A program made the translations under genes and the position numbers. Under the pieces are notes generated by a model. It did no database searches. It was not told the DNA's origin and worked only from the letters and a program-made list of their open reading frames with translations. Below are positions 35,586-61,246 of a stretch of 64,000 nt of DNA, one piece after another. Source of the stretch: Trichoplax adhaerens (taxonomy: Eukaryota; Animalia; Placozoa). Every line of letters begins with the position of its first letter. Within the stretch, counting starts at the first letter, position 1. The stretch is from positions 580,809 to 644,808 of the forward strand of contig NW_002060969.1 of assembly GCF_000150275.1 (NCBI RefSeq), given 5' to 3'.

Positions 35586-37388
35586 CTACTTTCCTTCATA
35601 AATTATTGGAGGGGGCTGTTTATATTCCCTTTTTCTATTTATCAAACGCAATTCATCTTTTAAAGCTGATTTTGCAGAGCGATCTTGATCTCCAAACCTT
35701 GGTAATCCAAGAAATAATTTTTTCTTCTGATCATAGCTTGTCGACATATCTTTAGTAAATCTTTCGCTGCTACGCCTTTTTAACATGGCCATTGGTATTT
35801 CGTTACCGGATTCCAAATATACTGTTGGGACGTCAACAAACCCACCACTTGCTAATCCAGTTGAGTCCAAGTTCCAAATTGGTAGATTATATTTTCCAAA
35901 AGCCTTACTATCAGGTGTACTTTGGGCGAAAGAAAGTTGATAATCAAGACTTGAGGGTTCTGTCATGCTTGTTAGATAAGCTATATCTTCTGGCATCGTG
36001 TACATTTCAGGCCCATAATTGTATAATTGCCTAGCTAACAGATTGTCCCTAGGGACAATAGTTTGCTTTGTCCCTGTTAGAAATTAATTATTCATCACTT
36101 TAACGAAGCGATATATCAGGTTTCTTTTAAAATTGAGTACAGTATACGCTGGACAATTCAAAACTAACAAAAATTATAAACAATAACAAGAAATACTTAC
36201 AAGCATCCCTTTTGTGCAAATTGATACTAGGTAGCCCATACAGCTTAGGTTCGTTATCTCTGTTGCTAAATGTAAGAGTAGGCATTCGAAATTCCATGCG
36301 TTTACTATCTCTCTTACCAAACATAATGGGGGGTATATTTTGTCGGATACTTTCACTATTTCTCTTACCAAACGTAATGGAGGGTATACCTTGTTGGATA
36401 CTTTTACCATTTCTCTTACCGAACGTAATAGAGGGTATACCTTGTTGGATGCTTTCACTATTTCTCTTACCAAACGTAATAGAGGGTATACCTTGTTGGG
36501 TACTTGCACTATTTCTCTTGCCAAACGTAATAGAGGGTATACCTTGTTGGGTGCTTTCACTATTTCTCTTACCAAACGTAATAGAGGGTATACCTTGTTG
36601 GGTGCTTTCACTATTTCTCTTACCAAACATAATAGATGGCATTCCTTGTTGGATGCTTTCACTATTTCTTCTATCAAGGACATCAGAATTGTGAGATTGT
36701 CTGCTTACTTTGATATCTGAAATCAAGAAAGAAATCGTAAATTAAATTTTTATTGCTTAACTAGTCTACATTATGAATATATGCATTCGGCAATGATTGC
36801 ACCCTTTCATGAATGCAGTGTAAATACAATAGTAACTGTAAGCTTCCTCTGCTACTCGACATCATAGTTATCTTATATCATAGAATGAATTTATGTATTC
36901 AAAATTTTCATTTACTCAAGTCTAGAATGTAAATATGCAAATTCTGGTAATAATAGTATCGTTTTAGTAGTACACTGTAGAACCGAAAAGATCACTTATT
37001 ACCTTCTAAATTTCTCCTACCAAAGCCTAGAGGAATAAATGTTGGTTGTTCACGCAAAGTGTGTCTCTTAGCTGATGATATAAAACGAGCATTTCCTAAT
37101 AATTATGAAGTAATCTTTTAAGAGACTTGCTTTGCACGTTCGATATCAAAAAAGAGTAATCGATTTTATAACTTTTTAGAACCATAATTACTTCAATGAG
37201 TAACTAACTGTAGATAGAATAGTTTAGATCGAAAATTGTTTACTATTTAAGATTACTACGTTATGCTTTAATATATCATGATGCCAATTTATTCTAAACA
37301 GGTATTATTTTATTTTACCTGGCGTAGTAGCAACCACTACCGCGATCATGAGGATAGTGTAAGATAGGAAAATCGAATTCGTTGCCAT
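35586..37388 (-). CDS. SITFamide neuropeptide-type precursor, 4 exons, ~388 aa
   Basis: Exons 37319-37388 (signal peptide MATNSIFLSYTILMIAVVVATTP), 37003-37095, 36201-36716, 35586-36073, joined by phase-1 introns in frame; seven 17-aa units ending FGKR (five GIPSITFGKR) give amidation plus dibasic cleavage sites. Confidence 0.93.
36207..36666 (-). repeat. Coding tandem repeat, 51-bp unit x ~9 (7 conserved, 2 degenerate)
   Basis: Repeating CTATTTCTCTTACCAAACGTAATAGAGGGTATACCTTGTTGG on the + strand, encoding NSESTQQGIPSITFGKR on the minus strand. Confidence 0.95.
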
Positions 37389-43156: not shown

Positions 43157-44200
43157 TTAACGACCATATCTAGGATAAAGATACGGCGGTGGTTGATCTT
43201 CTCTTGCTTTTCTATCATAGCTGCTTTCTTTGATAGATCCATGTTTCGAAAAATAATCGGGATTTAAAATACTCAATAAATCGCTTCGAGTTTCTAAACC
43301 CTCTTCATCATACCTATCATATAAATCACCTCGTGCAAATTTTAATAGTTCACTTGATGGGTTTTTTAGAAGATGTTGATATGGCGTTTCATAGTGACGG
43401 GGATCAAATAGACCATCGGATTTTCTTGTTATGTCATCATTTCCTATAGAATACGTTATATCATATTAGTAAATATTTCAGAAATCATTTTCGTCCAGTT
43501 AGATCGAACTAATTACAATTCCGAGTTATAAAAGCGATTTCTAGAGAATCATGTGTTAGCACCATAAAATTTTGATTTAATCCACCAGAATCAAGTATTG
43601 GTGTTGATAAATACAAGTACTAATCGTATATTGTATAGTTAACTGGATTAGTATGTATATAAATAAATTAAAAATAGAACTCATCTATTTTATTATTAGC
43701 TATTCAATTATATGCAGAAATTACGTTCTTATTCGTTAGATAGTACTGAATTTACACTATGAAATTTGTAGCTAATTCATAGGTTTACCCGGAAATTACG
43801 ATTTCTAAAATTTATATCCTTGTTCTTGTAATATGTTCTCATGTGTTATGATATTTTATTGCCAAGCTACAAATTAATTTTACATTGGATACTAGCTTCT
43901 TCAAATCGAATCTTTGATTAAAGAAACGTACTACAGGTTAAAAAGATATTGATACACCAAGACTAACTTAATAAAAGAGCCTATAGTACTATTAATTACT
44001 AAAAAACTAGAGTAAATGCTAATAAAAAAACAGTTCGTAAATTGCTTAGTCTGAGCATATTTTTGCAGCTTGTGCTGTATTGAAACGCTATGATATTGAG
44101 ACTCACCCAACTTTCCAGTAAAACCTGTTAGGTCATCAATGCGTCTACAAGAGACAGAAGCGAATAAAACATAGGTGTAAATGAACAGCAAAAATTTCAT
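43157..44200 (-). CDS. Secreted prepropeptide with C-terminal QPPPYLYPRY-amide candidate, 2 exons, 126 aa
   Basis: Exon 44107-44200 MKFLLFIYTYVLFASVSCRRIDDLTGFTGKL (signal peptide, donor GTGAGT, phase 1); exon 43157-43443 is open in the matching phase: GNDDITRKSDGLFDPRHYETPY...SYDRKAREDQPPPYLYPRYGR*. Confidence 0.85.
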
Positions 44201-59800: not shown

Positions 59801-61246
59801 AAGACGTATATTGATAGTATTGATATCAATTACGTACGCGTATACAAGTGACTGACTATTTAATTAATTTCCTATGTATGGCTACACGATGAAATCAGGA
59901 CAATTTATTGGTTAGTAGACCATAACTATAAATTCATCATTTCTCTCTAAAGCATAGAATTGTTGCTATTTTCTAAATTTAAGGCTATATGATACTATTT
60001 AAATTCATTGGTGTCTTTTCCTCTAAATTTAAGGAGGATTATCCTTTTTTCGGAAATAAAAAACGCCAAGATTATCCTTTTTTTGGAAATAAAAAACGCC
60101 AAGATTATCCTTTTTTCGGAAGCAGAAAACGCCAGGTCAGCTTCTATGATTGTTATAATATATATTACAATAAACAGTAACGAAAATTGATATTTAGAAG
60201 TTGCCCATTATAAAGCTAAGCGTAGTAATTTCAACAGGCATAATTAACAATTTTTTAGAATCATTCTATCAATGCTTATCTGTATTCAAACAGTATATAT
60301 TATTACACATTGTATCCGTATTGTGAATCCAAAGCAAAGCAGCCATTATTAATGAAACACCATAATTTGATGGCCATATTGACAAATAATTGAGATTGCT
60401 TCTCTTTAATAGTGTGCAATCCTCTCCTGCAGTATTATAGGCATAGATTCATTTCCTACATTAAAATATCGTTCTTTATTTAATGATGCCGTTGACTGTA
60501 CTGTACGTTAAGCATACAAATGTAAATTATTTCCCCCAAAATTCCTATTACTTTACACACTTATTTTCATTAATATTATGGGCTGATTTCCATGTTCTTA
60601 CATGGAAAATGGTGAGCTATTAATATTATTTAATAAAGTGAAGATCAATTAAATGAATAATTGAACTTTATGCTCCACTTGTATAGAACTTAAGGGAAGA
60701 TAAAGTGGACAGTTCGGTAAGTTATTTGTAAATAATGGTTGCAAATTATGTAATGATACGCATCGTACAGTATTAATATAGGAATATAAAGTGTTACTGG
60801 TTAATATCGCTCCTTTGAAAGCAAAAGTTTAATCTATCTGAATCGATAAACATGGCTATTATAGCTTAAAGTTATGATTATAATTATTAAGAGATATAAT
60901 TATTTTAATTAGGATGATATGTGGGATTTCCTTGAGAGAGATGTAAGTATATCACTACCATTTAGTCTGCTAAGTTTATAAATTTAACCAAGGTGAGTAT
61001 ATAAAGTGGTTACCAATAGTTTTGCTGTATGACTGCATAAATTTATGAACATTGATTATGCTAATAATGATGAATACTCAGTCCAATTAAACAGTATAAC
61101 AGCAATCAGGTCAGCAATTGTATAGCTGTTGATTTCAATTAAAATGATTTACATCGTAGCACTATCTGTTTAATGTTTTAATGTAGATCATTCCTTTTTG
61201 GAAGAGGAACCGATTGGCCTCCATTAAGAGGTCAAGAATGAATTAA
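56813..61246 (+). CDS. ELP: Endomorphin-like peptide (YPFF) precursor, 11 phase-0 coding exons, ~151 aa
   Basis: Exons 56813-56884 MDHKIKILALIVIAIAGLSSGKSM; 57896-57931 DKNGRNTVSLWT; 58083-58115 SAARDSKLAER; 58499-58543 NDQRKGYIYWETKRD; 58921-58932 ENPE; 59504-59527 SLAFFKRK; 59899-59910 DNLL; 60034-60135 EDYPFFGNKKRQDYPFFGNKKRQDYPFFGSRKRQ; 60687-60716 NLREDKVDSS; 60913-60942 DDMWDFLERD; 61187-61246 IIPFWKRNRLASIKRSRMN*. Confidence 0.9.
58915..59600 (+). repeat. Diverged intragenic tandem duplication (~450-bp period) inside the YPFF precursor gene
   Basis: AATTAGG..AATCCT...GTGAGC, TTTCTTAATTTATA, TTAATCTATTT, ACCT.AATGA, ATCCAGA, GTATTA recur at about 58915 and about 59361. Confidence 0.75.

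Follow-up and report, generated by a model that had tools for sequence, protein, structure and literature searches.

The window, by which we mean the whole 64,000-nt stretch of Trichoplax adhaerens DNA analysed here, carries on its minus strand a two-exon gene of 1044 bp for a small peptide precursor, referred to below as the PRYamide precursor. A second peptide precursor gene adjoins it on the same strand. The features of the two genes on which the argument depends are listed here.

44107..44200, minus strand: exon 1, with the ATG at 44200, which encodes the predicted signal peptide (about residues 1-17/18) and then RR-IDDLTGFTGKL, and which also supplies the opening base of the split Gly32 codon
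43444..44106, minus strand: intron of 663 nt, phase 1, GTGAGT...TTCTATAG
43157..43443, minus strand: exon 2, residues 32-126, with the stop codon TAA at 43159-43157; 100% identical to TrispH2_005563
43334..43378, minus strand: QHLLKNPSSELLKFA (residues 54-68), the second of the conserved products, with cuts following Tyr53 and preceding Arg69; seen by mass spectrometry (MS) and conserved in the second orthologue (L003)
43202..43213, minus strand: RKAR (residues 109-112), putative prohormone-convertase-type cleavage site; RK(A/T)R is kept in the second orthologue (P0002)
43196..43201, minus strand: Glu-Asp dipeptide, removed before Gln115 (MS flank [D].Q)
43166..43195, minus strand: mature QPPPYLYPRY (residues 115-124), as pGlu-PPPYLYPRY-amide; MS in Table S5 of Najle et al. 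2023, orthologues QPPPFLYPRY
43160..43165, minus strand: Gly125-Arg126, amide donor and carboxypeptidase-trimmed basic residue; invariant in P0002, amide seen by MS
35586-36005 (last exon) and 36127-36726, minus strand: SITFamide precursor TrispH2_005562, which adjoins the PRYamide gene at a distance of 6 kb

Exon 1 translates as MKFLLFIYTYVLFASVSCRRIDDLTGFTGKL plus one base of the split Gly codon. The donor reads G/GTGAGT at 44106 and the acceptor TTCTATAG/G (the slash marks the exon boundary), with exon 2 running from 43443. After the split Gly, exon 2 translates as NDDITRKSDGLFDPRHYETPYQHLLKNPSSELLKFARGDLYDRYDEEGLETRSDLLSILNPDYFSKHGSIKESSYDRKAREDQPPPYLYPRYGR, which begins NDDITRKSDG and ends SYDRKAREDQPPPYLYPRYGR before the stop codon. 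Upstream of the acceptor, the frame of exon 2 is open for just 8 codons (an open frame of 102 aa against 94 matched), so the splice is required to provide the start codon and the signal peptide. A hydrophobic core spans residues 3-14, after M-K (Kyte-Doolittle 1.5-2.1), and is followed by the small residues S15, S17 and C18, which fits a predicted signal peptide cleaved near residues 17-18; here we relied on a hydrophobicity heuristic and, for exon 1 as a whole, on the gene model. The gene is present as a single copy in the assembly of the window, and its product is expected to be disordered. The two exons were translated and searched separately, and the whole-protein searches used the identical database protein described next.

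A word-based search with exon 2 matched one protein, and this was the gene product itself: 'hypothetical protein TrispH2_005563 [Trichoplax sp. H2]' (P0001). It is 126 aa long, agrees with the window at 126/126 residues and holds exon 1, the junction Gly (...GKL-G-NDD...) and exon 2 as predicted. Over 21 kb, the window and the H2 contig NOWV01000082.1 (GCA_003344405.1) share 99.1% identity, and within the 1044-bp gene there are 3 differences, one synonymous (GGT/GGC, Gly26) and two intronic. The first-pass annotation had proposed this two-exon model with its coordinates, the 44107/43443 junction and the C-terminal motif from the sequence, and all of these hold, the same junction being used in the public H2 gene model. 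Its reading of the C-terminus as RKAR, (ED)QPPPYLYPRY, GR and stop is likewise confirmed by the exon-2 translation, RKAR-ED-QPPPYLYPRY-GR-stop. Its description of the gene as unannotated has to be withdrawn: the identical 126-aa model is in NCBI (TrispH2_005563) and appears again as H2NP008 in Najle et al. 2023, so that the gene is at most absent from the track of open reading frames. The window gene is the orthologue of TrispH2_005563, real, correctly read and already known; protein, mature peptide, processing and gene neighbourhood are the same in both, and the strain alone differs. The orthogroup of TrH2_TrispH2_005563, OG_936, has Tadh, TrH2 and Hhon members (Najle et al. 2023, PMC10580291, Table S5).

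The earliest report of the peptide is from 2023. The set of 11 behaviour-tested peptides of Varoqueaux et al. excludes the QPPPYLYPRY peptide, and a 2022 review still gave the placozoan preprohormone count as twelve (PMC9545775). A full-text literature search for the peptide sequence, 'PRYamide' and the locus tag yielded no main text that names them in connection with placozoans; matches to 'PRYamide' were Clytia RPRYamide and molluscan and insect peptides and were set aside. The peptide is also absent from the main text and one supplementary file of a 2025 secretory-cell paper, and no behavioural or physiological effect of it was found reported in the literature search.

The mature peptide can be read from published data. 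The peptidomics database search of Trichoplax sp. H2 recovered QPPPYLYPRY, amidated and with pyroGlu, in 3 PSMs at an abundance percentile of 0.96 and with the flanks [D].QPPPYLYPRY.[G] (PMC10580291, Table S5). Among the 60 peptides of the curated list it is entry H2NP008, with the annotation 'H13, almost identical: QPPPFLYPRY' (PMC10580291). In Hoilungia, the product of Hhon_g03416.t1, with Phe in place of Tyr at peptide position 5, was detected as QPPPFLYPRY-amide in 2 PSMs, with amidation the sole modification recorded and a percentile of 0.10 (PMC10580291, Table S5). The MS support for the RYamide is modest, with 3 PSMs from H2 and 2 from Hoilungia. The earlier claim of a secreted precursor with a C-terminal peptide amidated on Tyr is backed by these published spectra (pGlu-PPPYLYPRY-NH2), which supply, for both H2 and Hoilungia, the amidated product that was to be looked for by MS; the flanks further show that the dipeptide (ED), which the annotation had placed in brackets, is removed.

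The precursor has the layout of an amidated neuropeptide, the peptide being preceded by a basic cleavage site and followed by Gly and one more basic residue, and this layout is conserved in P0002. It also follows the rule for cnidarian and placozoan peptides of the pGlu...amide type: ED precedes Q115, and the spectra give [D].Q as the flank and show Gln converted to pyro-Glu. The placozoan DQPPRWGR shows the same D/Q processing, under a rule of D/Q to pQ and G-R to amide (PMC9545775). Expression of the H2 precursor peaks in the cell type peptidergic_zeta with a fold change of 288, Hhon_g03416.t1 is also zeta-specific (fold change 244), and the orthogroup is flagged 'signature_wSP_nTM' (PMC10580291, Table S5).

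Among 1.84 billion representative proteins searched with HMMER, the sole further true match is P0002, a protein of 133 aa that is 60% identical and whose C-terminus reads RKTREDQPPPFLYPRYGR before the stop. It comes from a 1.1-kb genomic contig (L003, Logan contig SRR30664516_15198, from the public run SRR30664516). The acceptor in this contig is ...tcgtatag/aa, and the real exon 2 runs from position 433, in place and phase as in Trichoplax. One should be careful with the deposited gene call, which opens at an intronic ATG in L003 321-432 and reads through the acceptor, so that the first ~38 residues are not real protein; the contig stops before exon 1. Since the internal peptide of P0002/L003, QRRLKNPVKELLKFQ, is not the one that Table S5 gives for Hoilungia H13, judging by sequence this contig probably represents a third placozoan lineage.

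Taken as a whole, we regard it as very probable that the locus is the Trichoplax precursor gene for pGlu-PPPYLYPRY-amide, orthologous to TrispH2_005563. Following established prohormone biochemistry, the signal peptide would direct the precursor into the secretory route and be cleaved near residues 17/18. A prohormone convertase would then cut after R109-K-A-R112, a role assigned to RKAR from the (R/K)-X2-(R/K) convertase rule, and the Glu-Asp dipeptide would be trimmed by the activity, typical of cnidarians and placozoans, that processes acidic residues at the N-terminus. Glutaminyl cyclase would convert Gln115 into pyroGlu, a carboxypeptidase would take off Arg126, and PAM would convert Gly125 to the amide on Tyr124. 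Both ends would be shielded from exopeptidases, one by the pGlu-Pro-Pro-Pro head and the other by the amide. Released from zeta cells as a paracrine signal, the peptide would then act on a rhodopsin-type GPCR of other peptidergic cells. The same precursor additionally yields at least one further conserved peptide, of the pQHLLKNPSSELLKFA type.

By the Nei-Gojobori method, applied to the two exon-2 sequences of the window gene and P0002/L003, exon 2 overall has a dN/dS of 0.29 at a dS of ~0.9. The value is 0.07 for the last 20 codons (SYDRKAREDQPPPYLYPRYGR), 0.14 for the first 34 codons, which form an N-terminal block, and 0.70 for the spacer between the two blocks. Selection is thus strongest on the last 20 codons, as the first-pass annotation had expected of an alignment of orthologues, and the N-terminal block of exon 2 is also under purifying selection. 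The annotation's claim of a single peptide fails here, because this conserved block gives MS-detected peptides, from the middle of the precursor, in both genera. They were recorded as pQHLLKNPSSEL in H2 (1 PSM, percentile 0.013) and as pQRHLKNPVNEFLKFQ in Hoilungia at a percentile of 0.63, against 0.10 for the RYamide (PMC10580291, Table S5). Given this greater abundance of the internal peptide in Hoilungia, the RYamide is perhaps not the chief product in all cases. One could go further and hold that the precursor makes several products, with the N-terminal half of exon 2 (KSDGLFDPRHYETPY plus pQHLLKNPSSELLKFA) as the main or an equal signal and the RYamide as one of two or three. The detection in both genera and the Hoilungia percentiles speak for it, as do the dN/dS of the first 34 codons and the 25 identities between P0001 and P0002 across residues 36-67. 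Set against these, the H2 internal peptide ranks far below the RYamide (percentile 0.013 vs 0.96), bears no amide and is cut after Tyr, which is not a classical basic site; it could be a piece left by degradation, or an element conserved for sorting or as a spacer. We consider this extended version a real possibility that falls somewhat short of even chances.

The remaining alternatives, which concern the target and the nature of the pGlu-PPPYLYPRY-amide, are all unlikely, in differing degrees. An Arg before an aromatic-amide C-terminus is a feature of the RFamide ligands of ion channels, and the peptide has it in common with them, so it might, instead of acting on a GPCR, directly gate a DEG/ENaC (ASC) channel in the manner of FMRFamide on FaNaC and of the Hydra RFamides on HyNaC. 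Of the roughly ten DEG/ENaC subunits in placozoans, some belong to the HyNaC/ASIC branch (PMC9545775). Against this reading, no placozoan channel is known to be gated by a peptide. In the published AlphaFold2 docking, 60 peptides were paired with 196 GPCRs and 11 ASC channels at a pDockQ cut-off of 0.23; for this peptide, 0/11 ASC channels scored positive, and two GPCRs were the sole positives (PMC10580291). One is TrispH2_008478 (GPCRrhod.HG78.7; pDockQ 0.255, FoldX ddG 7.5), expressed in peptidergic_mu, and the other is TrispH2_009407 (GPCRrhod.HG2.50, NPFFR1/2-like; pDockQ 0.256, ddG 0.59), expressed in peptidergic_kappa (PMC10580291). With scores barely over the cut-off, these are candidate receptors; of the two kinds of target that the first-pass annotation had put forward, a GPCR or a DEG/ENaC channel, direct channel gating appears unlikely, and action through a GPCR on other peptidergic cells is, on this modelling, the most likely route. 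A non-signalling role for the secreted peptide (antimicrobial, adhesive or digestive), with a resemblance to neuropeptides in looks only, is less probable again, and we would give it little credence. Among the peptides of Trichoplax are amidated, arminin-like antimicrobial candidates (PMC12013895), but the gene's site of expression is a dedicated peptidergic cell type, not gland, lipophil or epithelial cells, and the peptide is short, net uncharged and Pro/Tyr-rich, not cationic-amphipathic, with both ends blocked like those of signalling peptides. Least probable of all is that the precursor is a diverged member of a bilaterian RYamide/RFamide family (NPY/NPF or luqin/RYamide) or a spexin- or proenkephalin-like protein. 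Its Arg-Tyr-amide C-terminus and the NPFFR-like group of one docked receptor could be quoted in favour, as could the curated name 'hypothetical_spexin_proenkephalin-like' in Table S5, which its authors derived from a diamond search of invertebrate neuropeptide collections and mark as hypothetical (PMC10580291). The full protein matches no Pfam family at E up to 10, and phmmer against PDB chains gave no peptide-hormone match, only chance matches to a formyltransferase and ribosomal protein S18 (E 0.18-0.37). The exhaustive HMMER search found no relatives beyond Placozoa among the 1.84 billion representative proteins, matches at E <= 1e-3 being the protein itself, P0002 and P0003; there was no spexin or proenkephalin match at that threshold, and together with the missing Pfam family this argues against such homology. 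The peptide also lies at the C-terminus and not right after the signal peptide, and it lacks the family features discussed at the end of this text. We therefore regard membership in these families as highly improbable.

Three other search results should not be over-interpreted. P0003 (899 aa, E 3e-4) is a bacterial-type Thr/Asp/Gly-rich tandem-repeat protein, in which eight copies of a 28-residue stretch match the low-complexity segment TGFTGKLGNDDIT, and it was rejected as a relative. Language-model neighbours in the ESM Atlas are, with few exceptions, a mixture of unrelated neuropeptide precursors (DH31, urotensin 2B, NPFF, CCK, PDH, PBAN and QRFP), with shared-feature counts of 114-140, which is under family level; we read them as reflecting a generic neuropeptide-precursor look and nothing more. 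Structural neighbours were dismissed as meaningless at a pLDDT of 0.53.

The adjoining SITFamide precursor deserves attention in its own right. The last of its exons (35586-36005) carries D/QKKKLFLGLPRF/G, with PRFG at 35691-35702, and the corresponding pQKKKLFLGLPRFamide was detected by MS with pyroGlu and amide at a percentile of 0.96 (PMC10580291, Table S5) and, in the docking, was paired with an NPFFR-like GPCR from homology group HG2 (PMC10580291). Like the PRYamide, it is a single-copy peptide of the form D/Q...PR(F/Y)-G. The same exon ends in RKREYK-QPPPIIYE-GK, which is similar to the RKARED-QPPPYLY of the PRYamide precursor; the terminal QPPPIIYE itself was not found in Table S5 (PMC10580291). 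A comparison of the two precursors gave a borderline BLASTP E of 0.011 over 14 residues (RK.R..QPPP..Y), a local score reached by 33/3000 shuffles. They differ in orthogroup and in cell type (omicron for SITFamide, zeta for PRYamide), and at the sequence level tandem paralogy is no more than suggested. A bolder version would have them as old tandem paralogues, each with a single-copy pGlu...Pro-Arg-(Tyr/Phe)-amide and each signalling via paralogous NPFF-receptor-like GPCRs of HG2 (TrispH2_009407 and TrispH2_005100); this we consider improbable, if worth stating. If true, placozoan RF/RYamide ligand-receptor pairs would have been duplicated together, possibly with an ancestry common with bilaterian RFamide-type receptor systems. 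To our knowledge, the tandem-paralogue connection was not drawn in the 2023 paper.

Anti-FMRFamide sera stain SITFamide cells (Varoqueaux preprint), and the RFamide from the SITFamide precursor is a simpler explanation of this staining than a cross-reaction with SITFamide. The SITFamide repeat array, at 36301-36669 in the window, has a 51-bp period (17 aa, NSESTQQGIPSITFGKR) and aligns to H2 in several registers, one of them offset by one unit, which hints that the window strain and H2 differ in copy number or register. Endomorphin-like QDYPFFGN repeats lie on the plus strand at 60040-60117, 16 kb from the PRYamide gene. Between 35586 and 61246, the SITFamide (minus), PRYamide (minus) and QDYPFFGN (plus) sequences thus fall within ~25 kb, with HSP70 and HIT-family genes between them, and the three precursor genes may form a small peptide-gene cluster.

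Placozoans have no neurons, and their behaviour is coordinated by secreted peptides; each confirmed peptide is therefore a node of the type of chemical signalling network that is the oldest known in animals. For the PRYamide, the MS proof, the cell type, the orthologue and the candidate receptors have been known since 2023. Added here are the absence of relatives outside Placozoa, the gene structure of a second orthologue and the dN/dS by region of exon 2.

It remains to place the PRYamide precursor among known systems. By its sequence features it belongs neither to the NPY/NPF nor to the luqin/RYamide family, and the caution of the first-pass annotation, which had claimed no homology to either, was well placed, as family features are lacking and the Pfam, PDB and HMMER searches returned no such match. 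Peptides of the NPY/NPF family (Pfam PF00159) have ~36 residues and a PP-fold, directly follow the signal peptide and end in RxR(F/Y)amide; the PRYamide is a 10-mer at the C-terminal end of its precursor and ends in Y-P-R-Y-amide. The hallmarks of luqin/RYamide are an RxRY motif and a Cys pair in the precursor's C-terminal portion, whereas in the PRYamide precursor C18, at the boundary of the signal peptide, is the sole Cys, the peptide is C-terminal and RxRY is absent. What these bilaterian systems have in common with the PRYamide is the Arg-Tyr(Phe)-amide end and the amidation route; length, peptide position, RxRY, the PP-fold and the luqin Cys pair set them apart.

Two non-bilaterian systems offer further points of comparison. 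The hydrozoan maturation-inducing hormones (MIH), (W/R)PR(P/Y)amide, for example Clytia RPRYamide, share the Pro-Arg-Tyr-amide end. Unlike the PRYamide they are multi-copy tetra- and pentapeptides, and homology is not detectable. They act via a rhodopsin-type GPCR, as cited in passages of PMC9004410 and PMC9545775, and the MIH receptor is reported to lack a convincing orthologue in Trichoplax (PMC9545775). The precursor of the placozoan pQPPRWamide carries 11-15 tandem copies of a 6-mer, whereas the PRYamide precursor has one 10-mer at its very C-terminus, and no sequence similarity between the two was detected past the motif. That motif is, however, held in common in each of its parts: D/Q-P-P giving a pGlu-Pro-Pro head, a Gly-Arg amidation signal and an Arg-aromatic-amide end (PMC9545775).
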